Positions 9,221-63,082 of a DNA stretch of 64,000 nt are shown one piece after another; position 1 is the first letter of the stretch, and each line of letters begins with the position of its first letter. The translations under genes and the position numbers were made by a program. Location of the stretch: positions 1,240,001-1,304,000 of the forward strand of contig JBLDXI010000001.1 of NCBI GenBank assembly GCA_047495785.1, in the 5' to 3' direction. The DNA comes from Lepidodermella squamata. Its lineage: Eukaryota > Animalia > Gastrotricha. Under the pieces are notes generated by a model. That model was not told where the DNA came from, made no database searches, and saw nothing but the letters and a program-made list of their open reading frames with translations.

Positions 9221-10303
9221 ATGAATTTCTATCGGGCAATTAGTTCATTTTTGATTTTCCTTCTTTTCACCTTGTTGATCATCTTCGATCAGCGCCTAAT
9301 CTCGCCCTTATCGTTGCTACGGAGCTCCAGCCTAACTGTAACTAATCATTGGTGGATTATTGAAAGCCAGTCGAATGAAACAGCGAATACGAAACAAGAA
9401 TTCGAGCTGATTGATGATCCTCTCGTTGCTAACAAATCGGGGCCATACTACGTATTTCGAAGGGCAATCAGTGAAGCGGAACACGAGGCGTTTCGCTTCA
9501 CCCTCCGTGGATGCGTCGAACTGCTTCGATTAGCAAATTTGTCGAGCTCTCTATTCTTCGGATCTTTGATTGGCTACTATCGACACGGTGGCAAAATGAT
9601 CCCGTGGGACGACGATCTCGATATTTTCATGTACCCACCTCAGCCATCGCAACACGCTGGGAACTACGTGAAACTTCTTCGGAACGTATCGAAATCAAGC
9701 GAATCATTCAACGCAACATTCGGCCATTTCTCCGCCGCTAATAACAACCACGATACAGTAAAATGTTTCAGCATGTCTAGTAATTATTCGGTGCAAATGA
9801 AAGGTCACGACTGGAGGTGGCCTTACGTTGATATTTTCGTTATGGAGGCGGCTTCGATCAATGCAAGCTGGAGAATTAAAGACTTTGATTACTTTGAGTC
9901 GATTCCTCTGCGTCACAACGTTTCGGATGTTACGATAAGGCGATATGGGAGCTCGGGGATGAAGGCTAGAAATGTTTAGTTCTATGAAAATTGGCTAACT
10001 TTTTCATTTTTCATCAACAGTGCGCGTATCCTTACGAATTAATGTTTCCTCTACAACCTGTTGAGTTCGAGGGTGTCGAAATGATGGCGCCTCGTGATAC
10101 CAAGAGGATACTGACTGACTGGTTCGGTTATCAAGAATGCCAAGGTGAGAATTTCTGCCTACTTCATCATTTGATGGAGCTTTTCTCTCATTACAGCTCG
10201 TTCTTTTGACCATCGAAACGAGAGACCACTTCCATCGAACAACAAAATCAAAGTTGACTGCAATCTGTTGAAACCATACTATAATTTTACGAATTTGGAA
10301 TAA
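9221..10303 (+). CDS. LicD/fukutin-family phosphotransferase, type II membrane protein (copy 1), 3 exons
   Basis: N-terminal signal anchor; GSLIGYYRHGGKMIPWDDDLDI matches the LicD motif (GTLLGxxRHxxxIPWDDDxDI); WPYVDIF; later exons encode CAYPYELMFPLQPVEFEG...P. Confidence 0.88.
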
Positions 10304-15629: not shown

Positions 15630-15709
15630 TAAAATGTATTTTCGGTGTTTCCTTCATTTCGAAATAAAGGTCCAAATGGCTGTGTAAGGAGTCAAAAATG
15701 TTCAACGCC

Positions 15710-15781
15710 AGGCCCAGGCGGGAATTGAACCCGCGATCTTCTGTTTACGAGACAGACGCTCTACCACTAAGCTACTGAGCC
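15710..15781 (-). tRNA. tRNA-Thr (anticodon CGT)
   Basis: Reverse complement GGCTCAG-TA-GCTT-AGTGGT-AGAGC-G-TCTGT-CT-CGT-AA-ACAGA-AGATC-GCGGG-TTCAATT-CCCGC-CTGGGCC-T folds as a 72-nt cloverleaf. Confidence 0.95.
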
Positions 15782-16116
15782 TTGCCTGTCACGGAAATCA
15801 CGGGGGAAATTGATGAAAACGTTAATCAGTTTATTTTACATGCGTCGTCCACCTTATAATCATGAGCGGTCAGTAGTAAGCAGAATCTTGCTTACTTTTA
15901 GTATAAAGAATGCAGTGTCTCTGAGGCTTGAAACCAGTCAGGTGGGATTGGTTCGTTTCACGCGCAATGCGCTAAATTGTAGTTTGAATGCTAATGAGTG
16001 TATGCGTAGGAATGAAGCGTAAATGCAAATTTAGCTTCGTTTGAGAATCTGCTTATTATTTTCAAGCGCTGTACCTGTAGAGCCGCCTTAATATTTTAGA
16101 AATCATTATATCGAAA

Positions 16117-41443: not shown

Positions 41444-44400
41444 TCAATCTCGCAGTATCTGGGTGGTGCTAAGATCCGCCTCTTTGCAGTAGAACATCGA
41501 CATGAGAGGAGACGAGACCGCTTGATTTTGCAGCCAGTAAGTCGGAGATCCATCCTTAAGATAGTCAAAACATTCATCGTAATATTAAATAATGTAAATT
41601 TAAGTTTAATGTAAATTTTTAAACTTGCCGGCCACTCTCGTCGCTGTCAGCGTGAAACGGGCCCTAATAACTTGTCCCTTCGAAAATCGATAGAAGGTTT
41701 GCTACTACAGTATAATGCGTATGGATTAAAGTGTGTAACTTTTTGATGAATGGTGAATGGTCATCCCGTCCGAAGAAGATGGAAACCGCGCGGTGCTCCG
41801 TGAATGTTGAGAATTTACGCCTTCGATCCTCTCCTTTAAAATGCTGACCAGCAACACTCCATTCTTGATTGGGAGTTTTATTCATCACAGCTTCTTTTAA
41901 TCACAAAACGCGGCAATAGGAAGGCATCAAGCATCAAGCATAAGTCCAAAGAGTGAAATGCATCCAAACATTTGAGGCGGTCATATAAGAGTGACAACGT
42001 CGCAGTGATCATGGAAAGGGAACTGTAGATGGCGTGGAAATGAGGCGTGGCTCAAACTTAGCGACTGTAGCATCTGAGTGTAGAAAACTCGATGGATTAA
42101 AGCTATCGCTCAGGTTTTAGCTGAAGCTAAGCCTCCGGATCGATATTCGGAGCGAACTCTCACTACTATTCAGTCTATTCTCATTGTTGATCTTTGAACT
42201 ACTCATCATCGGTCTGCGATTTTGAGACACCTTCGCTACCGAGCTTTTGTCGCTCAAGCAAATAAACGATAATTTAGAGGAGCCGCGTCAGATATGAGGG
42301 AGGAAGGTAATGAATTAAGTTAACACCCCTTTCAGTTCCGCAGCGACGTATCTTCGGTCGCTGAGTCATGATAAAACCTCCTTGATGCTGTAGCTCATTG
42401 AAGCTCGATGCGCTCAGCTGAATTTGTTGAGCTGTTGAAAACATAATTATCAACGTTAAATGAAGCATTTCAAAACCTACGTCGAGAAGTTTGCTCCATA
42501 CGATTGGCTGAAATGGAAAAATCAAGTGGCTAATTGTTTTATCTGTCAAGACAATACCATGCTGAACGGTGTTTCCGAACAAGCAGTAGCGGAATGTTTT
42601 AAACCCGACGATACCCGCCATCACAGGGCCGCTGTTGAGGCCAACTCGAATACGAATTCGGTCTTTGCTCCGCGGAACTTTGATCATTGTGACCTCTTCA
42701 ATCAAAGCCAAAGCCAAAGAAGCGATTTCGACGGCATGGGACGGCAGTCGATTAGGAACTCCGCTGGCTACAACGTAAGCATCTCCGATGGTTTCTACCT
42801 TATAGCACTGATAGGCGTTGGCTCGGTTATCAAAAGTTGTGTAAACGGTGTTAAGCAGAGCCAACACTTCTTGAGCTTTCAGTTTCGAACAAATCGTCGT
42901 GAAGCCGACGATGTCCGAATAGAAAACAGTGACGTTGTTGAAGTACTCAGGGCGGACTTGAACGCCTCGGTTCAGTTGTTTTGCGACGCTTTTCGGCAGG
43001 AGGCGGTAAACGGCCTTGCACGAGTCGACATAACGATCGGCACAGTAATTGTATCGATTGATTATTCGGGAAGATTCCTGGCTCGTATGCAGCAGCCAAA
43101 TCGTTATGAACACCGGCAAAAGTAACCCGAGTATTGCCAGTTTCACCCCCTCTACAAAACTTGGTTTTTAAGCCCCAATGTAGCGTAGTGAAAATTATAC
43201 CGGAGATAACAGCCTCGTTGACTGCTTGAAGCCCCATGTCGTAAGTTGCGTCCATGTAGTCTTTACTATCGTCAGCATACTTTAGCAACGAACGATGAAG
43301 ACCAGCTGCATTTCTAGTCATCTCGTCTGAAAAAGCATTGAGATTTATTAATTCTTAATACAGTAGGAATCAAAAGATTACATCTGTCGTCTTTTGTAAC
43401 CAGCCAATGGGCCTTGGTTGCATTTTGCACTCGCAAGACATCGTTGAGAAGTTTAGCAATGCCATCAGTTATGTCACTTCCATCGATATCTCCAACTGTC
43501 AGCAGGTCAGCCTTCTCCAACAGAATACCAGCGACAGATAGCGAGTCTTCCATGAGCTGAGCATCCGATGAACGAAGAAAACTCGCCTTTGTATTGTCAT
43601 CAGAAACTACAGGAAAAAGTTATTTCTCGACTGCGAAGTTTTCAAGGAGTTTTTACTTAGATCTCGAGTCGCATAGGCGTAGAGAGTAGCAATTTGAAAG
43701 TAAATGATGCTTTTGCGCGCTAGTAAGAAGCCAAGGGTTGATAGCCACAGCGTATTGAAGCTGTCCTCTTTCGAGAAAATTTGAATTTCGACATCGGAGA
43801 TCTGAACCAAGATGCACTCGTAGAAAATGATATCGTCGAAAACTGTCATGCATAATTTGTCATATTAGCGTGTGATGCGATCTTCGTAGTGTCTTACCGT
43901 TGATAGCTCTTTCATCATATGCTCGGTAGATTTTTATAGGCATCGCACTGTCCCTGGTGGCCAAATCAGACCTGATACCATTGCTTTGGCATATGTACTC
44001 CCTGTATTCGGGTACGTCAAAATAGATACGGTTGAAAACGTTTGACCATTTTGAGAAAATCTTGGAAGAATTCATGATTCATTCGCGAAACATTTTCAAT
44101 GCGATTTAATACCTGATCATTTAAACTAACAGCATCCCCAATTTTAGCATAATCATTCGGGTCGTAATTGTTAGTCATATACTTGACCCTTGCCAACGAC
44201 TCTTCAAATACAGCCGCTGACATTTCCTCCAGCGCCTCGAAGCCTATAAAAGTGTTACCCATGTCCTCGTAAGTGCCTCGCTCGTCGAGTTTTCTCTGCA
44301 AGATGATTGCGCTCCTGACGATGCTGCACACGATCAGGATGACTAAACCGGCTGCCATGCCGCCGAGCAAAGATCCCGATTTGCTGGTCAGCGTCAGTGA

Positions 44401-44484
44401 CGCTGATTCTGCTTCGGCGTCAAAAATGTCGACGGAGGAGCGTCCGGAATCACCAGACTTGAGGCTACTACCACTGGTTTTCAT
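41444..44484 (-). CDS. 2-TM NIT-like-sensor guanylyl cyclase family protein GC-1 (penultimate exon interrupted by an insertion; possible pseudogene)
   Basis: MKTSGSS...; TM1, ~250-aa helical ectodomain, TM2, YRLLPKSVAKQL helix, FYSDIVGFT / KVETIGDAY / RYCLFG; last exon DGSPTYWLQN. Confidence 0.8.
41640..42350. mobile_element. 711-bp insertion in a GC-1 exon
   Basis: Removing 41640-42350 restores cga ccg aag aga gag tgg ccg (RPKREWP), matching paralogs RPKxEWP; short inverted ends gtcgctg...cagcgac. Confidence 0.7.
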
Positions 44485-45805
44485 TGTCTGTGCACTTATT
44501 GGTAAAAGCTGTCGAAAAAATATCTCCCAGGTAATAATACTATGTCCTTCGGAGAATAATGCGTTATTATGGATTATCCTTCGAAATTTCATTAATCATG
44601 ACTTAGGCTTATGTGGTTAGGCTGCTGATGAGTGATTAGCAAACAAACAGGATTGGCTAGGATGAAATTTCAATCATCCCGTAGTACCTATGTCAGGACG
44701 ATTTTCCAGGAAAATACCGAGTACAACATGCACCAAGCTGGTGCAGAGGCATGAAGATCTGGTTGAATCTAAAAAATGGGTCTGTGGTCTGCCAGGGTCT
44801 GGTTACCTGAGCTGTATTATATTGGAATAAAACGATCTTGCAATTGTTCAGGATGATGCCAAATTGATCCCAGACGCCCAGACGGGGAATTGGTAACTTG
44901 AATGTTTCATTAGATATCAATAAAGCTCATTGCTAAGGATTCTGGTAGAACCAGAACAACCAGCCAATGAAAAGCAAAATCTTCAGTTCCGCGGCACGTA
45001 TCGCGGATATCTCATGGAGTGGTATGGTATTGCCTCGGCAAAGTCGCTTTTCAGCAAAACAAAATTGGCAAAAATATTGAAATGGCAGGCAATAAATGGT
45101 TGAATGTGTTACTTACCACACCTTTTTATTCACAGGCACAACAAACCACCTGCTACTCAGGGGAAGCTACGTAGTACATTGAAGCTGACAGCTAAAAGTA
45201 GACCACACATAAGCGATATTAAAAACAGCAACAAATATTAGTCATATGAAACAATGATTATATATTGAATAGATATTGAATAGATAGATATTGAAACGAT
45301 AACATGAAGATTTGACACAGATTCACATATAATTATTGAAAACGCCATCAAAATCGGTGAAAACACACACTGTACAATAGCGCTGAGACTTAGTGCAGGT
45401 TATATCGTGCTCAGCGCGTCATAACTGAAATTTACAGATGTAGAGCGCGCGGGCGCGCAAATCTCAATCTTTATCACTTGTGTCCCATGAAAGTTGCAAG
45501 AGCATCACAGCGCAGCCACTCTCAACTCCAGAAATCGCTTGATATAACAGAAAATATGATTGCTGTTGCTGGAAATCGTTGGCAAAATTATCTGTCTCCT
45601 TATTATTCAAACTACAAATCGCTTTCGTTTTAGATTCGCGATTTCTTCCCCTTGGCTGCGCTATGATTCATTTTACTGTAATAACATACACCTTATTCAC
45701 ATGAATTTGACTATTACAATTACTATTACCACATCAACATTTCAAAGTCATAGAGAAATCAGTAAAATCCAGATAGATAACAGCCGTCGAGTGAGGCGCA
45801 GCCGG

Positions 45806-48125
45806 TTAAGTTCGAATGATTTGCGTTAGGCTGAAGTCTTTGCAGTAAAACATCGACAGCAACGTCGTTGATATTGCGTGGTTTTGCAGCCAATGAGTTG
45901 GGTTGCCATCCTTAATTACAGAAAATAAAGAAATGTAAAATTAATAGTTTGGTTTTTTAAGATAGTTACCGGCCAGTCTTTTTTAGGGCGCTGAGATGTT
46001 ATGAAACCGCCTTGTTGTTGCAATTCGCTGCAGCTCGACGCGCTCAACTGAATCTGCTGGGCTGTAAAAGAAAATTTGTTCGAAATTCGCTATTACGAAA
46101 TCATCAAAGAAAACCAACGCTGCGAAGATTGCTCCATTCGATTAGCTGCAAATGGAACAATATTTAGCTGTAACATCAAATCAACTATCAACTGTACTGA
46201 CCATGTTGAACAGTGTTTCCAAACAGGCAGTATCGGAATGTTTTGAAACCAACTATCCCAGCCATGACAGGTCCCGTGTTGATGCCGACACGAATACGGA
46301 TGCGTTCTGTGCTTCTAGGGACCTTGATCATCGCAACCTCATCAACCAAAGCCAGAGCCAGAGAGGCGATTTCAATAGCGTGAGATGTGATTCTATTAGG
46401 AACTCCGCTGGCTACAACGTATGCATCTCCGATGGTTTCAACCTTATAGCACTGATAGGTGTTTGCTCGATTATCAAAGGTTGTGTAAACGGTGTTAAGC
46501 AGGGCCAACACTTCTTGGGCTTTCAGCTTGGAGCAAATAGTCGTGAAGCCGACGATGTCCGAATAGAATACAGTGACGTTGTTGAAGTATTCAGGGCGGA
46601 CTTGAACGCCTCGATTCAGTTGCTTTGCGACGCTTTTCGGCAGGAGGCGGTAAACGGCCTTACAAGAGTCTATATAGCGTTCTACGCAGTGATTGTACCG
46701 ATTGATCAGCCGGCTTGTTTCCCTTTTTGAATGTTTCAACCAGATGATTGTGAATATCGGCAGAAGAAAGGCAAAAATTGCCAGTTTTACGGCCTCTGTG
46801 AGAGTCAATTTAATGTCGCCGGAATGATTAAACTACCTTTCTAACCTGAGACTATTAAACCATTCACGTTGTCCAAGCCTTTTTGGTAGTTGGTGTCCAT
46901 GTAGTCCTCACAGTCGGCCGCAAAAATATGAAGCAGGCGGCGAAGGTTCGTCGCGGTTCGCGTCAATTCATCTGAAAAGGAGGGTTTTTGTCGCAGCCGT
47001 GAGCTTGAGATAACTTACATCTTCCTTGATCCTTGCTAACCATCCAATAAGCTTTTGTAGCATTTTGGACACGGAGTACGTCATTGAGTAAGATATCGAT
47101 GCCTTCACGAACTTCCTTCGAAGCCGCGCCGAGCTCAAGAGGAGTCAAAAGATCGGCTTTCTCGAGTAAGATACTGGCAACAGAAAGTGAATCTTCCATT
47201 AGCTGGGAATCAGAGAAGCGCGCGAAATCTGCTTTGGTACCGTCTTGAGATACTATAAGCAAAACAAAGTTTAGTGTGACCAAATTGTAAAGGATGAACT
47301 TACTAAGGGCTCGAGTTGCGTAAGCGTAGAGAATCGCGATTTGAAAGTAAATGATACTTTTTCGAGCCAACAAAAATCCGAGGGAGGCCAGCCACAAAGA
47401 GTTAAAACTGTCCTCCTGCGCGAAGATTTGAATCTCAACATCAGAGATCTGCACAAGGACGCATTCATAGAAAGCGATATCGTCGAAAACTGAAGGAATA
47501 TGGAGTAAGTCAAATCGGAATTGGATTACAAAAGTTTACCATTAATGCTTCTTTCGTCATACGCTCGATAGATCTTTATCGGCATAGCACTGTCGCGTGT
47601 AGCTAAATCAGATCTAATGCCATTACTTTGGCATGTGTATTCGCGGTACTCCGGCACGTCGAAGTAAATTCGATTGAAAACCGTAGACCATTTGTAGAAA
47701 ACCTTAGGGTATTTTACAAGTAAAGGGCAGTTATTGGACTCAATGGGTTATACCTGGTCGTTCATTGTTACAGCATCCCCGATTTCAGCGTAGTTATTTG
47801 GATTAAACTGGTTTGTCATGTATTTGACCCGAGCAAGAGCTTCTTCGAAAACTGCGGCTGACATGGCTTCCAAGGCATCGAAGCCTTCGAAAATATCGCC
47901 CATGTCGTCGTATGTTCCACGCTCGTCAATCGTTTGCTGCAGCATCACGGCGCTCCTGATGATACCGCACAAGAGCAAAATAACCAAAGCGGCTGAAATA
48001 CTGGCAACCAGCGTTCGTGACCGGCTGTTGAGGGTGAGGCTGGCTGCCTCAGCTTCAGCGTCGAAAATGTCTACCGAAGACCGCCCGGAATCTCCCGACT
48101 TGATGCTGTTCGAGTTGGCTCGCAT
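45806..48125 (-). CDS. 2-TM NIT-like-sensor guanylyl cyclase family protein GC-2 (9 exons)
   Basis: MRANSNS...; exon series homologous to GC-1; ends DGNPTHWL...QIIRT*. Confidence 0.88.
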
Positions 48126-48623
48126 CTTTGGAAAATGAAACTCAACTGAAATTTGTAATGTCTTGCTAATTAGTAGATGGATTTTCTCTCATCGCGTCAA
48201 CGAAGCGTTAATTATCTGCGGGTTTGCACCTGATTGTCAGTTCGATAGGATAATTCGGCTATAATCTTACAGCACCGAAATCTCATACAAAATGTTTAAC
48301 AAATAGCTCGGACTTGCGTCTCCCAACTCCACATCTCATCTTCTTTGAGAGAAAACGTTTTCCGTTGTTTGCCATCATAAAACCTTCACAAAGCCAACAT
48401 TCAAATGATTGCAAAAGTTTTTTACTCGATGAGCCTTATTTGAAAATGAAAGCACAGTGTCGTTGATGATTTGGGACAAGATCAGCGCAAATTAAAAAGG
48501 AAAGAACTCTAGTTTTGCCGCGTTAGCGACGATGTATATACGAGATGCACGGACATGAACCGATAATTGTAAACAACGATCAATAATTCATTGTGTCACG
48601 TGAGTAAATAACTAGAATAACTT

Positions 48624-50942
48624 TTATCCCCGTGTGATTTGAGTAGAAATTGCAGTTTCTTTCCAGGCGCAGAAAAGCGATAGAAACTGGGAGCATGTCG
48701 CTCTATTGGTCAACCAGTACGTGGGGAGTCCATCCTAAATGTCAAATTGAGAACTTCTCATGAGAAAACACCAAGAGTAAGCGTACCGGCCACTCGCATT
48801 TTGGACGCTCAGTCATCATGAACCCACCAATTCGAATCAGCTCTCGATAGGAAGAAAGACTAACCTGAATTTTTTGCGCTGTTGGATGAATTATTGTAGT
48901 AGCCACCCAAATAATAGTGAAACAACTTACGTTCGGCCGTTTGCTCCATACGATTAGCTGCAAAGTCATTTATCAAAACACTTTTAGATGCGGTTAAATA
49001 ACTAACCAGTTTGGACTGTATTTCCGAAAAGGCAGTAGCGGAAAGTCTTGAACCCAACAATACCCGCCATTACAGGGCCACTGTTGATTCCAACTCTTAT
49101 TCGAATCCGGTCTTTGCTGCGGGGAACTTTGATCAAGCCGACCTCTTCGATAAGAACCAGAGCTAATGAAGCAATTTCGCCAGCATGCGTTGTTGACCGA
49201 TTCGGAACTCCACTTGCTACAACATATGCATCGCCGATGGTCTCCACCTTGTAACATTGGAAGGAATTCGTTCGACTGTCGAAAATTGAGTAAATTGTGT
49301 TTAGCAGGCTCAGGACGTCCTGAGCTTTCATTTTCGCGCAGGTCGACGTGAATCCGACAATGTCAGAGTGGAAAATCGTGACGTTGTTGAAGTACTCGGG
49401 ACGAACTTGAACGCCTCGGTTCAGCTGCTTGGCGATGGTTTTCGGCAAGAGTCGATAGATAGCTCGGCATGAATCCATGTAACGCTCAATGCAGAAGTCG
49501 TAACGGTCAAGAAGCCGTTTAGCCTCTCTGCCGGTATGAAGCAGCCATATCGTGCTGAGCCAAGGCAGTAGAACACCGATGATAGCCAGCTTGACGCCCT
49601 CTTCATAAATTCTTTAAATAAATAACTTAAGACTTTTAGAGCTGCAATTACCTGAAATTATTGAGTTCAAGGCGTCGGCCACGGCGTCATCATATGAGCT
49701 CATCATAAAATCCATATATTCCGATAATATGCCTTGAAGGTCCGAGCTGATAGCAGAAACAATGCGATTCACATCGTCTGAATGAAGAACGAATGAAGAA
49801 ATCCTCGTCCTAAAAAATTCCCACTTACATGCTGAGCTTTTTGTCGCAACGACATAAGCTTTTGTAGCGTTCGGAATTACAGATGCCTGGTTTACAAGCT
49901 CCTTGATAGATGCTGAAACTATTGGCGATCTCGCGCCGACGAAATTCGGCGTAATCGTGAAAGCTTTGTCAAGAAGCATTGTTGCCAGGGCCATCGATTC
50001 TTCCATTACATTTGCGTCTGAAGGCCTAGTAAAAGCTGCTGAACTCGAAGTAACTTGAGAAATTCGAAATTATCGACAAGCAGCCAAAGGAATAAACCTG
50101 TACCTAAGGACCTTGTTGCATAGGCGTAGAAAATGCCTTGTTGGAAACTTAGAATGCCTCTTTGCGCTAGTAAATAAGCTAGAGCAGCTTGCCACAGCAC
50201 ATCCAAACCAGTCCCACCGGCAAGAATTTGAATTTCGGTATCATGAAGGACATTCATCAAGCATTCGAAGAACGCAATGTCATCAAAAACTGAAAAGTAA
50301 AGACTGTTTAATATCGCGATATGTCGATGTTAGCAAAATTTACCATTTAGTGTTCTTTCGTCAAATGCTCGATACGAACGAACCGACATGGCTTCGTCAC
50401 GAGAAGCAAGATTGGATTTAATCCTCGCAAGTGAACATTTATATTCTCTGTACTCCGGAGCAGTGAAGACGAGATCGCTGAAGATGTTGTAATATCGATA
50501 GAAGACCTGTTGGAAGATTGCAATTAATTTGAATGAATTGTAGATAAATTCACTTCACCTCATCGCTCCCAGTAACTGCCTCGCCCATCGCAACATAATC
50601 GCTGGGATTGTAATTTCCAGTTATATACTTGACCCTGGCGAACGATTCAGCGCTGTTTCCCGTAATCAGCGCCGTTAATGCTTCAAATTTTGTGAACACG
50701 CTGCGAGCCTCTCGAAGTTTATCCAGATCGTCAACTGATTTAGACAGAACAACAGCGCTTCTTACGATACCGCAAAGGATGACAACGCCGATTGAGAAGG
50801 CTGCGGCAATCAGCAAAGGCTTGGCTCGATTTGCTAGCTTTAGTGATGCGGCTTCAGTTTCAATCTCCTTAAAGGTATCGCCAGATGCCAGAGAAATTCC
50901 AGATCGCTGGCTTCCACTTCGAACGCTGACATCTCGGCGCAT
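48624..50942 (-). CDS. 2-TM NIT-like-sensor guanylyl cyclase family protein GC-3 (9 exons)
   Basis: MRRDVSVRSG...; class III cyclase motifs; ends DGLPTYWL...QITRG*. Confidence 0.88.
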
Positions 50943-51283
50943 AATTACGAATAGCTAATAAAACACCTAGTTATAGACAAATACCAGAACCTGAAATTGA
51001 GAGAATATCAATGAAGTGAAGATAATGGCAATAGATAACATGCATTACAACATAGGTATTATGTAAGGTGAAAATTACCTGCAGATCTTAGAATGTGTTT
51101 CATACTTGAAAAGATTTCTTATCATTGAGTTACACACAAAACATATTATAAGCTGCACCGCGTGTTGGCTGCTTGTTTGTAAAGCTTACGTTATTTTAGA
51201 TGACCAAAAAACCGGCTTATGCCGCGCTGCTGACGATGTTCCTGATACCTAATAACGTGCGATTATATGTCCCTCGTTTTCGA

Positions 51284-53569
51284 TCAGATCCGCGAGACTT
51301 CTGTGAGAGTGTAATCGAGTCCGGCGCTGCAAAACAGTGACAGAAAAGGAGAGTTGGTGGACTTGTTCCTCAGCCAATAAGTAGGCACACCCTCCTATCC
51401 GAAGGTAAGTGAAAATACTTGAGAAGGTATGGCAAAGATGAAATACTTACAGGCCACTCGTTTTTAGGCCGTTCCTGCAGTATAAACCCACCTAAACGAC
51501 TGAGCTCGCGATACGACGACAGGCTGACTTGAATTTTCTGCGGCTGCGATGTCTGCTCCATGCGATTTGCTAGCATTTTATACAATTTTACGAAAGTGTA
51601 GTTATAGTTGAAAATATACCATTTTGAACTGTATTTCCGAAAAGGCAGTAGCGGAAAGTCTTGAACCCAACAATACCCGCCATTACAGGGCCACTGTTGA
51701 TTCCAACTCTTATTCGAATCCGGTCTTTGCTGCGGGGAACTTTGATCAAGCCGACCTCTTCGATAAGAACCAGAGCTAATGAAGCAATTTCGCCAGCATG
51801 CGTTGTTGACCGATTCGGAACTCCACTTGCTACAACATATGCATCGCCGATGGTCTCCACCTTGTAACATTGGATGGAATTCGTTCGACTGTCGAAAATT
51901 GAGTAAATTGTGTTTAGCAGGCTCAGGACGTCCTGAGCTTTCATTTTCGCGCAGGTCGACGTGAATCCGACAATGTCAGAGTGGAAAATCGTGACGTTGT
52001 TGAAGTACTCGGGACGAACTTGAACGCCTCGGTTCAGCTGCTTGGCGATGGTTTTCGGCAAGAGTCGATAGATAGCTCGGCATGAATCCATGTAACGCTC
52101 AATGCAGAAGTCGTAACGGTCAAGAAGCCGTTTAGCCTCTCTGCCGGTATGAATCAGCCATATCGTGCTGAGCCAAGGCAGAAGAATGCCGATGATAGCT
52201 AATTTAATCCCCTCTTGAAATCAATTCACATGAAAGAAATCTCAAAATTGGAAAAGCAAAAAACCTGCTATTATTGAGTTCAAGGCGTCGGATACGGCAC
52301 CATAATATGAGCTCATCATAAAATCCATATATTCCGATAATATTCCTTGAAGGTCCGAACTGATAGCAGAAACAATACGGTTGACGTCGTCTGAAAAAAT
52401 CGAACAATCAGGTTTTCTTTATGAACATTTCCAGATATTAACATGCTGAGCCTTTAGTCACAACGACATAAGCTTTGGTAGCATTTGGTATTACAGATGC
52501 CTGATTTACAAGCTCTTTGATAGTCGCTGAAACCAGTGGCGTTCTCGCGCCGACATAGTTCGGCGTTATCGTGTAAGCTTTGTCAAGAAGCATTGTAGCG
52601 AGGGCCATCGATTCTTCCATTACGTTCGCGTCTTTAGGTCTTGAAAAAGCTGCCGATCGTTGTGTCACTTGAAAAATTTGATATTATAGAATATTACATA
52701 GCCGTATCGCGATGGCCTACCTAAAGATCTTGTCGCATAAGCATAAAGGATGCCTTGCTGAAAACTTAAAATGCCTCTTTGCGCGAGTAAATAAGCAAGA
52801 GCAGCTTGCCACAGCCCGTCCAACCCTGTCCCACCGGCGAGAATTTGAATTTCGGTGTCATGAACGACATTCATCAAGCATTCGAAGAACGCAATGTCAT
52901 CGAAAACTAAAAATATAGCACTCATAGCTATATAATACGCTTGTAGTCTGTCGATTTTGGCAAATTTACCATTCAGAGTTCTCTCATTGATTGCTCGATA
53001 CGATCGGGCTGACACAGCTTCGCTTCGAGATGCAATATTTGATTTAATTCTCGCAAGAGAACATTTGTATTCTCTGTACTCCGGAGCGGTGAAGATGATA
53101 TTGTTGAAAACATCGAAATATCCAGCGGTAATCTGTTGTCGGAAGATATTATAATTTAAATGAATAGTAGTTACATTCATTTCACCTGATCCCTCGCAGC
53201 AACCGCCTCGCCCATCGCAACGTAATCACTTGGATTGTAATTTCCAGTCATATACTTGACCCTCGCGAGCGATTCAGCACTGTTTCCGTTGATAAGCGCC
53301 GTTAAAGCTTCAAATTTTAAGAACACACTGCGAGCCTCTCGAAGTTTATCCAGATCGTCCACTGCTTTAGACAGAACGACAACGCTTCTGATGATTCCGC
53401 AAAGAATAACAACGCCGATTGAGCAGGCTGCGGCGATAAGCAAAGGCTTGGCGCGATTTGTTAGCTTTAGTGATGCGGCCTCAGTTTCGATCTCTTTAAA
53501 GGTGTCGCCAGATGCTAGAGAAATTCCCGATCGCTGGCTTCCACTTCGAACGCTGACATCTCGGTGCAT
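51284..53569 (-). CDS. 2-TM NIT-like-sensor guanylyl cyclase family protein GC-4 (8 exons)
   Basis: MHRDVSVRSG...; ends EGVPTYWL...EVSRI*. Confidence 0.88.
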
Positions 53570-54071
53570 GTTTTCCAACAATGAGATGCAAGTTATCAAC
53601 CTCAAGAAGTTATTTAATCACCTAGTAAGGCAGATAATTGGCATTGAATATGCATTCTCGGCTACCCGACAAGAGATGATTAAAGAACGAGAATTTCCTC
53701 ACCGTATTGTGACAGAATTATGGATATATGACAATAAGCTTTATACAAAATTATCAGTAGACTAATTATTAGTAGATACTATTTGGCAATTTGGAAAGAA
53801 ATCTGAATACCTATTGGAGATTGGGCGAGAGGCAATAAATAACAATTAAAAATTACTATTTGGGGTAAATTTACATGCAGTTGTTTTCGGACTTTAGTTT
53901 CTAGTTTTCATGTCACTATACAGCAAAGCTGCCCTGTATATTGGATGACTGATTTAAACCTCACCGTATTTTAGATTAATTCAGCAAATAATCGTGTTAT
54001 GCCGCGCTGCTGACGATGTCCCAATAATACTTTATCAACGTGCGATCATATCTCTTATACATAGTTGTCAA

Positions 54072-56431
54072 TCAAATCCGCGAAACTTCTGTGAGTGTAT
54101 AGTCGATCCCTGCGCTACAGAACAGTGACAAGAAAGGAGAGCTAGTGGACTTGTTCCTCAACCAATAGGTTGGAATACCGTCCTATCGAAAGTTTGCTTT
54201 GGAGAATTAATAAGATATAAACTGAACAATGACTTACGGGCCACTCGTTTTGAGGCCGTTCCTGCAGTATAAACCCACCTAAGCGATTGAGCTCGCGATA
54301 CGACGATAGGCTGACTTGAATTTTCTGTGGCTGCGAGGTCTGCTCCATGCGATTAGCTATTTTTTCAACTAATTTACGGAATTATAATTCAAGCTGGAAT
54401 GATACCGTATTGAACTGTGTTGCCGAAGAGGCAGTAGCGGAATGTTTTGAAGCCAACAATACCCGCCATTACAGGGCCGCTGTTAATGCCGACTCGAATG
54501 CGTATCTTATCCTTGCCCCGAGGCACCTTGATCATTCCAACCTCCTCAATCAAGACAAGAGCCAACGATGCGATTTCGATGGCATGAGCCGAAATGCGAT
54601 TAGGCACTCCACTTGCTACGACATACGCATCTCCTATCGTTTCCACCTTATAGCATTGGAAAGAATTAGTTCGATTGTCAAACGTCGAATAGATTTGGTT
54701 GAGCAGGCCCAGCACGTCTTGAGCTCTCAATTTCGAACAAATTGACGTGAACCCAACTATGTCCGAGTAGAAAACCGTGACGTTGTTGTAATACTCAGGG
54801 CGGACCTGAACGCCCCTATTTAGCTGCTTGGCGATGCTTTTCGGCAAAAGGCGATATATGGCTCTGCAAGAATCCATGTACCGTTCAACACAAAAATCGT
54901 AGCGACTGAGGAGTCGCTTGGCCTCCCCAGCAGTATGCAGAAGCCAAACAACGCAGAGCCATGGCAGCACAATTCCAAATATAGCCAATTTGATACCCTC
55001 TGAAACACCTTTTGAATCTTTTTGAAAGTAAAAGTTTGCTTACCTGTGATGACGGTGTTGTAGGCTGAAATGAGAAAGCCATCGTATGAATCCAACATTA
55101 ATTTCGAAAAATCGCGGCTAATTTTGTCCAGCTGACGACTTAATTGGGCACTGACTAGTGACTGCTCGTCTGAAGTGATGCATTATTGTTATCGATGTTT
55201 TAATTTCAAATGCAAATATTACAAGTTTGTCCCTGAACAACTAGAACGTATGCTTTAGTCGCATTAGTAGTCGCTGCTGCTTGATAGCTTAGTTCTCTGA
55301 TTGCTGCAACCGTTTTTTGAGCTTCAATGGCAATATTTCTTGGTAATAAAAGGCTGGCTCTCTCTAGCAATATTGCGGCCAGATTCAGAGAGTCTTCCAT
55401 TTGCAAGGCATCAATGCTCCTCTCGAAATTCCCCGCGTTGGTTCTCACTTAAAATCCGAAAAATTCATCCGTTTAGCATTTTTTTAAAGTTAACAAACCG
55501 AGATTGCGATAGGCGTAAGCATATAGAATAGCTTGTTGGTAATTGACGGAAGCTCTTTGAGCCAGAAGATAGGCGACAGATGCGCTCCAAATGGGGTCCA
55601 ATCCTGTCCCACTCGAGAGAATCTGAAGCTCCGTGTCGAGAATTACGAGAACGATACATTGGTAAAACTCGATGTCTTGAAACACTTTTAGAGAACAAAT
55701 TAAGACGGATTCCTTTAATCATAATAAATTCGAAGAAAATAACCCATTAAGATATAGCTAAAAGGATAAAACGGCTAGTGAAAGGGGGCTATATTCGTAT
55801 CCTTCCGTGTAGGTAGAATAAATAGTTACATACCTTTAAGTGTACGCTCCTCGTAAGCTCGGTAGGCTCGAATCGAGAGCGCTTCGGGCCGCGTTTGCAG
55901 ATTAGACTTGACGCGGACCAGTGAGCATTTATACGTTCGATATTCCGGAGCCGTGAAGTAAATTTTCGATAACACGTCGAAATGTTTATTGAATACCTGA
56001 AAACCAGCTTGTTTCGAACAGTTCACTGATTATAAAAAATTGAAACATACTACGTCGTTCAAAGTGACAGCCTCTCCGATAGCTACGTAATCGCTCGGGT
56101 TGTAGTTATTTGTCATATACCGGACCCTAGCAAACGATTCCAATATGGTGGCATCAGCTAGATCGGTAAGAGCCTTGAATGCGTCAAAATTGTCGTAGGC
56201 ATCTTGAAGACTCTCAATATCCTCCACAGATTTGGACAAAATTATGGCATTTCGCAGAATTCCGCAGATCATCACTACGGTTAGCGAACAGCCAAGTGCA
56301 ATCAGCAAAGGCTTCGATCTATTAGTCAGAACTAGTGTTTTTGCCTCCATTTCGACTTCTTTGAACGTATCGCCCGACGCCAACGACCTGCCGGATTGTT
56401 GGCTGGCACTTCTACTGACAGCGCGAGACAT
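54072..56431 (-). CDS. 2-TM NIT-like-sensor guanylyl cyclase family protein GC-5 (8 exons)
   Basis: MSRAVSRSAS...; class III cyclase motifs; ends EVSRI*. Confidence 0.88.
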
Positions 56432-57164
56432 TTTCAGAAAATGTTGTAGGTACAAGGTCTCCTGAAAATGGATGTGTAGTCAGACAGACTGATCTGGGAT
56501 TGAGTTAATTTATAGTCATTTTACAATAATCCTCCTTATTTGGAAAATTGAACTTTTAGCCTAATCACGTGAATCATATAAATGCGACTCGCATAGATTA
56601 TTTCAGTGCGAAAAAACAATGGAGAGCTCAAGAAAATTTGATAAATGTAGGCATGAGATTAACGTCGCCGTTCTTTCAACTATATCTGACGATCGAATGG
56701 ACATTGGACATGGTATCAAACTTTATGACTCATATTATGACTTAGACCTTCAGAGGGAGACGCGTTGTTGCGATGTGCTAATTCACTTGTGCATATTTTT
56801 GCTTTCGTCGATTTTCACTTCGGGTTAACTCTTGTCAAGTTGATGAATAGACACAATATCGAAAACAAACCATTCGTGGCAGACGTAATCTGCTGGCAAC
56901 TCTCACCAGCTGTGGCTCGACAACTGGGTCGATTTTTTTGTCTGGAAGGGGGATGCAATATCTTTTGAACCTTGAAAAGGTAGACATGTCGTGTGATTCA
57001 ACCGTGAGAACATTGAGATAAGGTCGTCCGTTGGTGCGATAACCAATTTCCGACATACAGCTGCTAGTTCGCAAGATGCAATTTACCGGTGTATAACAGA
57101 TAAAATGTCTGAGAAACTCGACCGATGGCCTCGTTTACTGATGACAAGATGCAGCTGTCGCGGC

Positions 57165-57171
57165 TATAAAA
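57165..57171 (+). promoter_or_regulatory. TATA box of the lipase gene
   Basis: TATAAAA ~60 nt upstream of ATG 57230, in GC-rich flanks. Confidence 0.5.
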
Positions 57172-57229
57172 GCAGCCTAATTTGAGGCCAATATTGTATA
57201 ATATCGAAGCTTACTGAAACCTTGAAATC

Positions 57230-58341
57230 ATGAGTTCATTTAGTCTTCTTTCTGCCGTTTTGCTGCTTGCAGCTGGTACTGCCCACGCAGGCAAGGTGTG
57301 CTACGAAAAAGTTGGATGTTTCAACAACAGCTCTCCCTTCAACCACTTGCCGCTACCTAAAGATCCGTACACACAGATTCCACCGATTTACTATTTGCAC
57401 CGAAATGGACAACCTCTCGTTACGATCACCGATGGGTAAATTCTAGTGAAATCTTCATGTATATGCAAATTATGTGTCTCTGTAACAGAAAATCATTGGC
57501 CAAGGATGTTTTCGTGCTTGTTCATGGCTTCACCGAGTCGTACAACGTTTCGTACCCAGCTTGGCAAAAGGATATGATTGAGCGTCTGTGGCAGGTCAAA
57601 CCTCTGGCCGATGTCATTGTCCTTAGCTGGGAAAAGGGCGCCGCGGCTATTCAGGGCCTTTCCGTCTACAACCAAGCTGCCTCGAACACTCGCACCATTG
57701 GCGCTGCTCTTGGCGTTTTATTCAACGAGGACGGCAAAGAGGATCACTCGACTTACCATTGCATCGGATTTTCTCTTGGCTCTCATGTTTGCGGCTTCGC
57801 TGGTAAAACAATGATCAATAAATTCGGCCGAATTTCCGCCTTGGACCCAGCTGCGCCTGGTTTCAGCACCCTGAAAAATCTGGAAGCCCGCGTTGCTGTT
57901 GGCGATGCTGATTTCGTCGATGTTATCCACACCTCCAAATTGGGTAAATTCCGATACTTATATCTTTGTCTATCCATTAAACAAGCTATCTATTGAACAG
58001 GTATCTATTTCCCGGTCGGAGACAGTGATTTCTGGATGAATAATATCAAGCAACAACCCGGCTGTTATGACAATATTTCAGGCTTCGGAGATCTAGTCAG
58101 CGCTGTCACATCTTGCAGCCACGTTCGGGCAACTCATTTTTACACTGAATCCATCAACCCTGCGCCTGGTTGTAGTTTCCTCTACTGCCCATGTGAGACG
58201 TGGTCATTGCTCGACAAAGGCCAATGCCTCACTTGCGACGCCCATCTAAGCGCGGAGCTGGGCTACAGATCTATCCTGTCATCGGCTCGAGGTGAATTTT
58301 ACGGAAAAACCACTAGCCAGGCACCCTATTGCTTGCAGTAA
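57230..58341 (+). CDS. Secreted pancreatic-lipase-family protein (catalytic domain only), 3 exons
   Basis: Exons 57230-57435, 57489-57943, 58001-58341; signal peptide; VCYEKVGCF; VHGF; nucleophile GFSLG; LDPAAP; DVIHT; QPGC...CSHVRA. Confidence 0.92.
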
Positions 58342-59356
58342 GTAACTGAATTGTTAAAAAAGGAAAGCTGAATTCATATGTATGACTTGAATGACTTAGG
58401 AGTAGGAAGAGCTTAGCCGAAATCTTGTCAAATAAATGCATATTAAAATCGACAACATTTAATATTGGACTTGAAAAGATCTTGCGACGGCTATCAGTTG
58501 ATTTTCTAATTGCTTAAATAGCAACAAGAATTGGTGAACACCACATTATTAACCCCGTCGGAATTTGGCCAAAATTCAGAGATTAGGTAACGTGAAAAAA
58601 CGTTTTATTGTTCATCCATTCTCTCACAGTAACCGCCTCACTTGATTCGTTGTCATTCGTAGTCATATGCTTGATACTCGCGACTCACGAGCGATTCAGC
58701 ATTCAGCAGCGTTTCCGTCAATCAGGGGTGCCAGAGCTTCGAATTTGTTGTCCTCGCGTCGTGAAGTCTCCTGGGTCTTCTGCAACTAACAACTTGATAG
58801 AGAACGATTTTGAAAGGGTCAATAACGCTGATCGAACAGTCAGAGCTCTGAGAATGGGGCTACAGTATCAATGTCTTGGATCGCTGATTATCACCATGGG
58901 AACGTTCATATCTCGGCGCTTAGCGACGATGATGTGATAAGCGATTTTAGGTCATCTCAAAATTATTAATTAGCACCTATTAATGTAAATGAGTAGCACA
59001 GATTTTCCAAAAACCGATCATCGGAGTGGCATGCCGGACATGCAGAACTAAAAATATGCATGGTGCATATTCAGACCAGGATTGTAAACAGATATTGCAT
59101 ATTATTATATAACGGTTGAAAGTTACCCAAAGTTCACCTCAGAAAGCATTAGAAGGGAGAGCAAGCACACATCATTTTAGGCATGATATAATTGTGCGAG
59201 CAACCCTGTGAGCTGGAGTGAATAACTATATGCCCGAACTTGCAGAACTGCAGATAAACTAGCGACAAGATTATTTGTTATGCCGCGCTGCCGGCGATGT
59301 CTCCCTAAATGCTTAATCTAGGAGCGATTGTATCTTCTCTTATCCCTCATTTTCGA

Positions 59357-62300
59357 TCACATCCGCGAGACTTCTGTGAGCGTATAATCAATCGTGGCGC
59401 TGCAGAATAGCGACAGGAAAGGAGAATTGGTGGACTTGTTTCTCAGCCAATAAGTTGGCATGCCATCCTATGGAAGGTTAGTCGAGAATATTGGGAAGGA
59501 ACGGCAATGATGAAAAGCTTACAGGCCACTCGTTTTTGGGCCGTTCCTGTAGTATAAATCCGCCCAGTCGATTGAGCTCGCGAAAGGACGACAGGCTGAC
59601 TTGAATTTTCTGTGGTTGCGAGGTCTGTTCCATGCGATTAGCTATCATTCAGTCACGTTATACGAAAATATACGAAAATGGCTATTAAATATTAAATCAG
59701 CAAAAATACCGTATTGAACAGTGTTGCCGAAGAGGCAGTAGCGGAATGTTTTGAAGCCAACGATACCCGCCATAACTGGGCCGCTGTTGATGCCGACTCG
59801 GATGCGTATCTTGTCCTTGCTCCGTGGCACCTTGATCATTCCAACCTCCTCAATCAAAACAAGAGCCAACGAAGCTATTTCGATAGCATGACCCGTAATG
59901 CGATTAGGCACTCCACTTGCTACGACATACGCATCTCCTATCGTCTCAACCTTATAGCACTGGAAAGCATTCGTTCGATTGTCAAACGTCGAGTAGATTT
60001 GGTTGAGGAGGCCAAGCACGTCTTGAGCTCTCAATTTCGAGCAGATTGACGTGAACCCAACTATGTCGGAGTAGAAAATCGTGACGTTGTTGTAGTACTC
60101 AGGGCGGACCTGAACGCCCCTATTAAGCTGCTTCGCGATGCTTTTCGGCAAAAGGCGATATATTGCTCTGCAAGAATCCATGTAACGCTCGACGCAAATA
60201 TCGTAGCGATCAAGGAGTCTTGTAGCTTCCTTAGTAGTATGCACGACCCAAACAATGCATAGCCATGGTAAGACTAGACCAAATATAGCCAGTTTGATTC
60301 CCTCTGAAATAAAATTTACGGGACAATTGAACATTCGTATCACGTATCAAGAATGTTGATGATGACAGAGCCTTTCAATTGTTTTTTCGCGCTTTGAACA
60401 ATGAAAAACGCTCATTCGAGAATTACAGGTAACGAAATCATACAAGTTGTTCAATCGGGTTACCTGTGACGACGGTGTTGTAGGCTGAGTTCAGGGCGTC
60501 ATCGAATGAGTCCAACATGACGCTTTTGTAATAGCGGGTAATTTTCTTCAACTGCTTTGTTATTTGAATACTAACAATGGACTGCTCGTCTGCGATGAAT
60601 AACTAGTTTTAAAAGGTGCTCATGCGTAAATGTCTTACATGTTTGTCCCCGAGATACAAGCAAAAAAGCTTTCGTGGCATTAGGGATCGCATCCGATTGA
60701 TCTATTAGCCCTTGTATTGCTGCAATTGCCTCGTCAGTTCCATCAGCAGAATTGCTTGGTAACAATAGACTTGATTTTTCCAGTAGCATAGCAGCCAAAT
60801 TCAGGGAATCTTCCATTTGCAAAGCGTCAGTTTTCCGCTCGAAATTCGCATTATTTGACCTCACTGTTATTGCAAAACAGGGTAAAACAGTGGCGAATGT
60901 TTGCTAAATGGGGGTAACTATATGGCCTTCAGCCGTCAGCCTACTATTCGAAGTATAGCTGTCCTATTCTAGCAAACCCATGCACATCTGATCCACCACA
61001 AAGCAACGAACTCCCTGATGCCCCAGATATTGCTCAATCGTCGCATTTACACGAGCTACTTCGTAATTATCGATGTTAATTACTTCGGTTGTTGCGTCAA
61101 CATTTTTACTTTAACTCAAACGAGCGCTGTTTTTATTTTTGTGAGAAATTTTTGCGGGCGCTGTTAACAACTCTCTGCAGGGCGGTTTAAAACTCAAATT
61201 TTGCGGTATAAAGTAATCGCAATTTCGCGATCACATCGTCGGCTGGCACGTAATCTAAACAATTCTCCTGCTGGTGAATAGAAATGATCGATTTCGTGAT
61301 TATAGAAATTCTTATATGTTGCCAAAATCCTTCTAAACTGAATTCTGCAACGAATCGCGTCACTGCGGCAGTTTCAAGCCACCCTATATTCTATATTGCA
61401 GTACGGAAAATACTTCAGCAAATTCAAAAATCTGAAAATGTCGATAGGCTCGAGGTATTTTTCATGACTCTCGAGCGATTCCGAGTATTAGAGTGTTGTA
61501 GTCCTAATAGCCCCAATTTTTAAAATTAATGGCCTAATGTTGATGTGAGACAATTAATCCTAAAATAAGACACTAACAACACAATTTCTTAAATTTTCAA
61601 CCGCAATTTAGACTTATCAAATTTCGATTTTGAATTTTATTTTTCAAAAGTTTTCTCACTCCTTTTTCTCGGAGAAAATTATCAAAATAGTTGAATAATT
61701 TTCACAGCAACCTAAAAGCAAGGTACTAGGCACCCATAGGCCTCAATCGAGCTAATTTTGAGGTTTTTCTCCAAGAGCCATACTCGCTCCGTAGCTAAAT
61801 CTTTCGAATTTGTGGATAAAACAAAGCATTCAGCCTTTAGTGAAAATGATTGCGCAACTGTGAAAGTAATTAACATTGATAATTATGGGTAGTCTAGTGT
61901 AAATGGGACGAATTATTATTCCATTGTGTTTGAGGTTGTAAGTTGAAAAAAATCCGCACGCTGATTGGTCAGTTGGCTCGTATCCATGACTCCGCCTTGC
62001 TACTTGATCGTGCGATCTATATAATTTGTGGCTTTTATTATGTTTATGAAGGCCGTATCGTAGCACGCGTTTCCAACAAATGCGTAAAACCATTCATAAA
62101 AAGATATTTTTTGCAAACATTTTATGGATCGCACGATCAAGTAGCAAGGCGGAGTCATGGATACGAGCCAACTGACCAATCAGCGTGCGGATTTTTTTCA
62201 ACTTACAACCTCAAACACAATGTCAGTATTTTTGATTACCGAGAGCGCGCGAGGCGTATGCTGTTAGCACTGCTTGTTGGTAATTGATCGCAGCCCTTTG

Positions 62301-63082
62301 AGCCAGCAGATAAGCAACTGTAGCACCCCAGATGCTGTCCAATCCTGTTGCGCTCGAAAGTATCTGAAGCTCAGTGTCCAGAATAACGAGAATGCTGCAT
62401 TTTAAAAACTCAATGTCGTCGAAAACTGTTGACGCAATATGGGAAATAGCTAATGTGAAATTCTAACGAAATGTATGATACCATTTAATGATCGCTCGTC
62501 AAAAGCTCGATAAGCGCGTAGGGATAGCGCTTCAGGTCGAGAAGCTAAATTCGACCGGATTCGTGCCACGGAACATATGTACGTTCGATACTCCGGGGCT
62601 GCGAAGTAAATTTTCGTCAGTACATCGTAATGTCTGTTGAATACCTAGAAGGAGTTATTGAAGAATCCATCATCATCAACAATATTATAGTGATAACTCA
62701 CGACATCATTCATCTTGACAGCCTCTCCCAGAGAAACGTAATCACTAGGGTTGTAGTTATTAGTCATATACCTGACCCTGGCAAACGATTCTGAAATAGC
62801 CGTATCAGCCAAATCTGTCAATGCCTCGAATGCATCAAAATCGTCATTTGTATCTTGAAGAGTTTGAATCTCTTGGGCTGCGTTGGACAAAATTATGGAA
62901 CTGCGCAAAATCCCGCAGATAATGACTACGGTTAGCGAGCACGCGAGTGCAATTAGAAACGGCTTGGCTTTGTTAGTCAGAACTAGCGACTTTGCCTCCA
63001 TCTCCACTTCCTTGAATGTATCGCCGGATGCCAAAGACAAGCCGGATTGTTGGCTGCCACTTCGACTTACAGCTCGAGACAT
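59357..63082 (-). CDS. 2-TM NIT-like-sensor guanylyl cyclase family protein GC-6 (8 exons, intron 3 ~1.37 kb)
   Basis: MSRAVSRSGS...; all exons homologous to GC-5 present with GT-AG borders; ends EVSRM*. Confidence 0.85.
61922..62222. mobile_element. 301-bp MITE/foldback element with 96-bp perfect inverted arms
   Basis: 61922-62017 is the exact reverse complement of 62127-62222; TC on both outer sides; lies in intron 3 of GC-6. Confidence 0.85.

Follow-up and report, generated by a model that had tools for sequence, protein, structure and literature searches.

Six tandem receptor cyclase genes in the gastrotrich Lepidodermella squamata retain the metal-binding half of the catalytic site and have altered residues in the half donated to a partner

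Introduction

In a class III nucleotide cyclase dimer each chain has two roles: in cis, its own two Asp residues and an Arg bind two metals and the triphosphate, and in trans it contributes the purine-specifying pair, the ribose-orienting Asn and Ser, the Arg of the transition state and, from the beta7-beta8 hairpin, the Lys that contacts the gamma-phosphate. What kind of enzyme, if any, is a cyclase that keeps the first set of residues and has altered part of the second? This question is raised by a 64-kb stretch of the genome of the gastrotrich Lepidodermella squamata (contig JBLDXI010000001.1, positions 1,240,001 to 1,304,000, hereafter the window), in which six tandem genes encode membrane receptors with guanylyl cyclase (GC)-like domains whose catalytic residues depart from those of canonical enzymes in the same way in every copy.

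The six-gene array

A six-frame motif scan of the window located the string FRYCLFGNTVQ exactly six times, always on the minus strand and between 42.5 and 59.8 kb, and stop-to-stop maps combined with an enumeration of GT-AG junctions placed them in six co-oriented tandem genes with a common exon plan. The whole genes span 41444-63082, whereas the interval first proposed, 42351-60304, takes in their cyclase parts. Each model consists of 8-9 exons encoding 632-636 residues, with no internal stop and with GT-AG at every junction, and the introns measure 44-160 nucleotides (nt), with the exception of one of 1376 nt in gene 6 and one of 770 nt in gene 1. The splicing of the models rests on the GT-AG consensus, on conservation between the paralogues, and on relatives in which the corresponding sequence is contiguous. 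Joined spliced models were used for local alignment, substitution rates, hhalign comparisons, local hidden Markov model (HMM) searches and trees, while single exons or database proteins were used for database and PDB searches. The paralogues form three pairs (genes 6 and 5, 4 and 3, and 2 and 1), with overall identities of 52-87%.

Hydropathy profiles of all six proteins outline a Ser-rich N-terminal tail, a first transmembrane segment (TM1) at residues ~41-60, an ectodomain of ~300 residues, a second transmembrane segment (TM2) at ~363-382, a linker of ~45 residues that contains …YRLLPKSIAKQLNRG…, and the cyclase domain. Exon 6 of gene 5 matches the Pfam family Guanylate_cyc (PF00211) with E=7.8e-43, and exon 7, a short piece, reaches 18.8 bits (E=1.3e-3), just below the cut-off of 21.9. 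In a phmmer search of the PDB with the main cyclase exon, GC-A/NPR1 ranked first (E=1e-41, with about half of the residues identical), and this match extends over the LLPxSVAxQL linker. Judged by sequence, the products of the six genes are receptors that cross the membrane twice and carry a class III catalytic domain of the guanylyl cyclase type.

Only partner-donated residues are altered

The critical motif is interrupted by an intron, and its reading depends on the junction. In all six genes the DNA reads ACN GTN CAA/CAG NNN G up to the GT of the intron and, following its AG, CN AAT CGN ATG GAR CAR, the variants being C(T/A/C), CG(C/T/A), GA(A/G) and CA(A/G). The intron is 49-68 nt long, lies in phase 1 and splits an Ala codon, and the spliced motif is TVQ(Y/Y/N/T/H/H)ANRMEQ, exactly as the initial annotation of the locus had proposed. 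Alignment by phmmer with the PDB sets the array Gln opposite the Asn of the GC-A TVN motif. The transition-state Asn is therefore Gln in six of six proteins, and the NxxxR motif reads QxANR, with its Arg kept.

Both metal-binding Asp residues are present throughout, within the invariant strings SDIVGF and ETIGDAY, as are the guanine-specifying Glu (KVETIGD) and Cys (RYCLFG), and an alignment with canonical receptor GCs, GCs with a NIT domain (NIT-GCs) and proteins resembling the alpha subunit of soluble guanylyl cyclase (sGC) places the beta4 Arg and the transition-state Arg in all six. The ribose-contacting Ser of alpha4, immediately before the transition-state Arg, is Asn in every copy, as it is in sGC alpha; the initial annotation, which was borne out on the Asp, Glu/Cys and Arg residues, on the Asn and on the missing Lys motif, had overlooked this change. 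Residue by residue, D, E, D, R, K and C are kept, Asn becomes Gln, Ser becomes Asn, the Arg is kept, and the Lys is absent.

The last of these residues belongs to the beta7-beta8 hairpin, which is itself altered. The array hairpin reads (E/D)WP(D/E)G; compared with RGxxxxKGKGxxxTYWL it is shorter by two residues, no Lys stands in register, and KGKG is absent from all six proteins. The consensus given for it earlier, RP(K/Q)x(E/D)WP followed by (D/E)GxPT(Y/H)WL, holds in five genes, where the two parts are separated by an intron of 52-59 nt, and fails in gene 1, which has RPKIRRCGTERG before its 770 nt intron and DGSPTYWL after it. The Lys of 'RPK' was considered as a stand-in for the hairpin Lys and ruled out, as its register is off by four residues and gene 5 has Gln in its place. 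No alternative exon encoding TVN or KGKG occurs in any frame of the window.

The alterations thus fall only on residues donated in trans to a partner, namely the Asn, the adjacent Ser and the hairpin Lys. A homodimer of such chains would carry two equally crippled sites, and the array proteins probably depend on a complete partner or have poor activity by themselves.

Selection and the age of the duplications

The cyclase domain had been described as strongly conserved between the paralogues, and substitution rates bear this out. Codon alignments give ratios of nonsynonymous to synonymous substitution (dN/dS) of 0.05-0.10 over the TM2-linker-cyclase part in seven of eight measurable pairs, with 0.24 for genes 4/3, and of ~0.15-0.16 over the ectodomain in two measurable pairs. 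Between the three gene pairs synonymous substitution has reached saturation. The duplications are therefore old, and the cyclase domain is under purifying selection strong enough to rule out decay. Across these old paralogues the Gln is invariant (codon CAA in five genes and CAG in one), and the residue next to it varies freely (Y/Y/N/T/H/H).

Metagenomic relatives and the history of the loss

A word search with exon 6, covering proteins of 119-359 residues, returned two metagenomic relatives, one 58% and the other 51% identical, the remainder being ordinary GC fragments. A full profile search added two further 50%-cluster representatives of the same clade together with a broad mix of cyclases, and no full-length annotated clade member was among its matches. 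The relatives lie on contigs of animal DNA (L001-L006), next to EGF, fibrinogen and ankyrin genes. One of these contigs, L001, holds two clade members in tandem (3020-5140 and 5717-7910), followed by ankyrin-repeat and EF-hand genes, so tandem receptor arrays are not peculiar to the genome of the window.

All four distinct relatives carry TV(L)xAN(R/V)MEQ or TILNANRLES uninterrupted by an intron, and this contiguous motif provides independent support for the spliced reading of the TVQ-AN junction in the array. The four have Leu at the Asn site and a hairpin without Lys, and they keep both Asp residues, the Glu and the Cys; one also lacks the transition-state Arg, which is kept in nine of the ten clade members. 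Both Asp residues, the beta4 Arg, the Glu and the Cys are invariant in all ten, and with them the metal-binding, or cis, half of the site. Because the relatives keep the Asp pair yet lose the Asn, the Lys and in one case the Arg, selection holds the cis half and not the trans half.

Quick trees of the cyclase domain unite the six genes and four relatives in one clade (support of 99 in the Shimodaira-Hasegawa-like approximate likelihood ratio test, SH-aLRT) on a stem of ~1.0 substitutions/site. The relatives branch outside the window array, and the position of the ten-member clade is unresolved between the sGC-type and receptor-type groups. Given common descent, the six-fold identity of the altered residues represents one event and not six. 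In the simplest history, the Asn and the Lys hairpin would have been lost once, in the ancestor of the clade, and the Gln probably arose later from Leu, by a single-base step. The idea that the Gln is a conservative survivor of the Asn is weakened accordingly, since the relatives carry Leu and the tree derives Gln from Leu.

An atypical-sGC fragment from the flatworm Schistosoma japonicum, named 'soluble guanylate cyclase 88E' (P0020), reads STVTTSELMEQTSSPQRIQVS, with the Asn and the Arg both lost. Its local string is strikingly near the RMEQTSQPQKIQVS of the window, and the fragment falls in the same unresolved region of the tree as the window clade.

Comparison with half-site cyclases

Sensory cyclase subunits whose sites are incomplete and which require a partner are exemplified by the obligate heteromers of the nematode ODR-1/DAF-11 type and the insect Gyc-89D/Gyc-88E type. 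The array shares the concept with these enzymes, and differs in domain architecture and lineage; the comparison is one of concept, not of sequence. In residue pattern the array resembles sGC alpha, the C1 domain of adenylyl cyclase (AC-C1) and chytrid NeoR, which like the array proteins keep the two metal-binding Asp residues and have lost the Asn that is donated in trans. Half-site subunits also share with the array the replacement of Ser by Asn before the Arg/Lys position and a hairpin without Lys, although their substitute for the Asn is Thr or Ser, and that of the array clade is Gln or Leu. Exon 7 (NRMEQTSQPQKIQVS…RPQNEWP) matches only an sGC alpha subunit among all PDB chains, without gaps over 39 residues, and database proteins resembling sGC alpha show the same combination of xAN(K) and a Lys-less hairpin. 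The sensor is different, being a two-TM ectodomain in the array, H-NOX in sGC and rhodopsin in NeoR. No Pfam match to HNOB was obtained on the array exons, and the proteins are two-TM receptors, unlike sGC alpha, which is cytosolic and has an H-NOX/PAS/coiled-coil N-terminal half; only their degenerate trans face is alpha-like.

The GTP-bound structure of CaGC gives the hairpin Lys a role at the gamma-phosphate and the Arg one in the transition state, with the sugar oriented by the Asn/Ser pair (PMC7384201). Experiments on the NeoR/RGC1 pair show that NeoR lacks NxxxR and gives only its metal-binding Asp residues to a single active site, and the degenerate site is allosteric (PMC12264004). Half-site subunits as such are therefore already known, and the array would represent a divergent case.

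The interpretation that we tentatively favour is that the array proteins are subunits resembling sGC alpha, AC-C1 and NeoR, which donate a metal site to a complete or beta-type partner encoded elsewhere. Such a chain would have an intact cis set and a trans set in which the Asn is Gln, the Ser is Asn, and the Lys hairpin has given way to the shorter (E/D)WP(D/E)G turn, and it would act as the metal-donating member of a heterodimer. Pairing would then yield one catalytic site and one degenerate nucleotide pocket, possibly regulatory. The weakly NIT-like ectodomain of ~300 residues would sense a ligand, and the signal would pass via TM2 and the short helical linker. We infer the pairing, as well as the identity of the partner and an output of cyclic GMP (cGMP).

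Several observations weigh against such a subunit. All six genes share one defect and thus cannot complement one another, and no complete or beta-type cyclase was found in the 64-kb window. The Arg, Glu and Cys that a chain provides in trans are kept in all six proteins, and the transition-state Arg is retained almost throughout the clade, unlike in sGC alpha, NeoR and AC-C1; in sGC alpha and NeoR the position is Lys. The E-value of the exon 7 match to sGC alpha is only 0.05, weak as befits a short piece. The invariant Gln beside a freely varying neighbour is a hint of some remaining role for the trans face. Finally, a search of public runs for the stretch gave as its only match a non-RNA contig set, possibly the source of the assembly itself, and no RNA run.

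Alternative explanations

Two of the possibilities raised by the initial annotation, low-activity or pseudo-cyclases on the one hand and heterodimer subunits on the other, would both fit changes confined to the trans residues beside an invariant metal half, a pattern that does not in itself differentiate between them. The first can be divided according to whether any catalysis remains. It is possible, if doubtful, that the array proteins are homodimeric guanylyl cyclases of low or strictly ligand-gated activity, in which the Gln and the new alpha4 Asn partly orient the ribose and the loss of the Lys lowers turnover without abolishing it. Apart from the Asn, the Ser and the Lys the site is canonical, down to the Arg and the pair that specifies guanine, and the Gln is constant over paralogues with saturated synonymous sites, next to a variable residue. 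Bona fide NIT-GCs with canonical sites also exist, and one Platynereis NIT-GC makes cGMP. The relatives argue otherwise: their Leu at the Asn site cannot form a hydrogen bond and is the simplest ancestral state, the Gln is probably not a retained amide, and none of the ten clade members has the gamma-phosphate Lys. Mammalian adenylyl cyclase mutants in the Asn and the Arg, moreover, reportedly lose most catalysis, a finding attributed to Yan et al. in 1997. In favour of such a homodimer, GC structures with bound GTP or an analogue show no hydrogen bond from the Asn to the ribose, so that the Asn may be less critical in these enzymes (PMC7384201).

An unlikely alternative is that catalysis has been abandoned in every pairing, and that these are pseudo-cyclase receptors whose domain is a nucleotide-binding or dimerisation scaffold signalling via other proteins. 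The long stem followed by strong constraint would suit such a change of function, as would the loss of several trans residues, extending in one relative to the Arg; the same ten sequences, however, hold both Asp residues, the beta4 Arg, the Glu and the Cys invariant despite deep divergence, which would be unexpected if metal-nucleotide chemistry had become irrelevant. Altered chemistry, a third suggestion of the initial annotation, involving another substrate or product such as a different nucleoside triphosphate or a non-cyclising reaction, finds no support and is very improbable: the residues contacting ribose and phosphate are indeed unusual, but the Glu/Cys pair that specifies GTP, the fold and the metal site are canonical, and there is no positive evidence for it. 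Mis-splicing, assembly error or pseudogenes, to which the lack of a matching RNA run and the aberrant penultimate exon of gene 1 might point, can be dismissed as scarcely credible against six models that are free of interruptions and whose introns share the GT-AG consensus and conserved positions, a TVx-x-ANRMEQ spacing that is contiguous in relatives, dN/dS (omega) of 0.05-0.10 in most measurable pairs, and a codon present in six copies.

Family placement of the ectodomain

Guanylyl cyclases with a NIT domain were described by Moroz et al. 2020 (PMC7400543) and Jokura et al. (bioRxiv 10.1101/2023.08.02.551600), and the array proteins match them in architecture. The two share a transmembrane segment, a helical ectodomain of ~300 residues, a second transmembrane segment, a short linker and a cyclase domain, with no kinase-homology domain, and both show tandem expansions. 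The array proteins have neither a kinase-homology domain nor an ANF-receptor ectodomain and so differ from GC-A/NPR1, which also has the conserved Asn, Ser and KGKG that they lack.

Evidence for homology of the ectodomain itself is weak. No single exon matched Pfam NIT (PF08376) at E<=1, an HMM built locally from eight Pfam-confirmed NIT-GC ectodomains found no match, and an ESM Atlas feature search with the E2-E3 stretch gave no usable match. When the joined ectodomains were compared by hhalign with the eight NIT-GC ectodomains, a probability of 84% was obtained with the transmembrane segments included; without them the score was 32 (25% probability) over the central 111 columns, where 30 column shuffles reached at most 18.7 and a reversed control 16.4. 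The profile match is weak and colinear, and the ectodomain may be called NIT-like, with a weak case for sequence homology to NIT. The array cyclase domains do not nest among NIT-GC cyclases in the quick trees, where they form a long branch of their own.

The catalytic sites of the NIT-GCs are themselves variable. Canonical members from Haliotis, Holothuria and Placozoa (H4) keep TVN, SR and KGKG, unlike the array, and degenerate sites occur in Lineus (TVQ…K), Tubulanus (TVT…K) and Glandiceps (TVG…K). Because bona fide NIT-GCs include such sites, degeneration of the trans face is recurrent in two-TM cyclase receptors.

Other features of the locus

Positions of the features discussed here are collected in Table 1. 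Genes 1-3 have an extra phase-1 intron of 49-57 nt after ANRMEQ(T/S)(S/A)x that is without counterpart in genes 4-6, and the metagenomic relatives apparently possess this ANRMEQ-side intron and lack the TVQ-AN intron; introns have thus been gained or lost between paralogues. Intron 2 of gene 4, of 63 nt, keeps the reading frame and contains no stop codon, and its retention would add 21 residues with the frame intact.

Two introns are much enlarged. Intron 3 of gene 6 has 1376 nt, compared with ~51 nt in the paralogues, and contains a self-complementary stretch of ~300 bp (84%) and inverted repeats of 74 bp, which suggests a transposable-element insertion. The last intron of gene 1, at 770 nt compared with 52-59 nt in the paralogues, is accompanied by a second, diverged copy of the ancestral exon end (QRREWP followed by GCAAGT, a GC splice donor) near 41645, some 700 nt downstream. 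The change in the intron and exon end looks like an insertion or duplication event, and no further copy of the intron was found within the window.

Beyond the cyclase domain, genes 4-6 share a conserved C-terminal tail, …SPFLSLFCSA..DYTLTEVSR(I/M), which closes with S-R-I/M, similar to PDZ-binding ends of class I, and a conserved Cys lies close by; the ends of genes 1-3 are different. The upstream neighbours of the array include large, nearly intron-free genes with MAM and LDL-receptor-class-A repeats, a tRNA-Thr(CGT), and two LicD-like genes, of which the second is extended at its N-terminus by a long stretch of Ser-rich repeats. The best match of the MAM-domain neighbour is a metagenomic contig (47%), followed by echinoderms at 29%.

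Table 1. Positions of array genes, diagnostic sites and other features in the window
Feature	Position	Strand	Remarks
Gene 6	59357..63082	minus	8 exons, 634 residues; GT-AG at every junction, hydropathy peaks
Gene 5	54072..56431	minus	8 exons, 634 residues; architecture as gene 6
Gene 4	51284..53569	minus	8 exons, 635 residues
Gene 3	48624..50942	minus	9 exons, 635 residues; extra 52 nt intron after ANRMEQTAE
Gene 2	45806..48125	minus	9 exons, 632 residues
Gene 1	41444..44484	minus	9 exons, 636 residues; aberrant penultimate exon, last intron 770 nt
F codon of FRYCLFGNTVQ, genes 6 to 1	59746, 54442, 51656, 49043, 46238, 42594	minus	motif scan
Gln codon, gene 6	59714..59716	minus	CAA; transition-state Asn position
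Gln codon, gene 5	54410..54412	minus	CAA; transition-state Asn position
Gln codon, gene 4	51624..51626	minus	CAA; transition-state Asn position
Gln codon, gene 3	49011..49013	minus	CAA; transition-state Asn position
Gln codon, gene 2	46206..46208	minus	CAA; transition-state Asn position
Gln codon, gene 1	42562..42564	minus	CAG; transition-state Asn position
Hairpin, gene 6	59444..59543	minus	RPKNEWP, 55 nt intron, DGMPTYWL
Hairpin, gene 5	54159..54258	minus	RPQNEWP, intron, DGIPTYWL
Hairpin, gene 4	51371..51471	minus	RPKNEWP, intron, EGVPTYWL
Hairpin, gene 3	48711..48807	minus	RPKCEWP, intron, DGLPTYWL
Hairpin, gene 2	45887..45990	minus	RPKKDWP, intron, DGNPTHWL
Hairpin, gene 1	41531..42360	minus	RPKIRRCGTERG, 770 nt intron, DGSPTYWL
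Extra phase-1 intron, gene 3	48879-48930	minus	
Extra phase-1 intron, gene 2	46062-46118	minus	
Extra phase-1 intron, gene 1	42432-42480	minus	
Last exons with conserved tail, genes 6 to 4	59357-59467, 54072-54182, 51284-51394	minus	
Gene 4 intron 2	52907-52969	minus	in frame, stop-free
Gene 6 intron 3	60864-62239		1376 nt
Self-complementary stretch, gene 6 intron 3	61922-62222		~300 bp
Inverted repeats, gene 6 intron 3	61038-61110 and 61839-61911		74 bp
Gene 1 last intron	41555-42324	minus	770 nt
Upstream neighbour features	2026-8104	plus	
Upstream neighbour features	9221-9979 and 13459-15312	plus	
Upstream neighbour features	15709-15782	minus	

Implications

The residue pattern cautions against annotating the array genes as active guanylyl cyclases. 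They belong to a clade, deeply diverged and under strong selection, whose membrane receptor cyclases have evolved the asymmetry of sGC alpha, AC-C1 and NeoR and yet keep the transition-state Arg, and this clade offers a natural intermediate for the question of how homodimeric class III cyclases become half-site heterodimers. A more speculative extension, which we consider rather unlikely, is that the lineage has expanded two-TM, NIT-derived receptors into a large family of alpha-type sensors, each pairing with one or a few complete cyclases. Chemosensation would then work combinatorially through class III asymmetry, in analogy to tuning receptors that work with a common co-receptor, and the retained Arg/Glu/Cys pocket would bind a nucleotide allosterically. 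The array would represent a new family of sensory receptors in a poorly sampled group of animals, provided that a shared catalytic partner exists.

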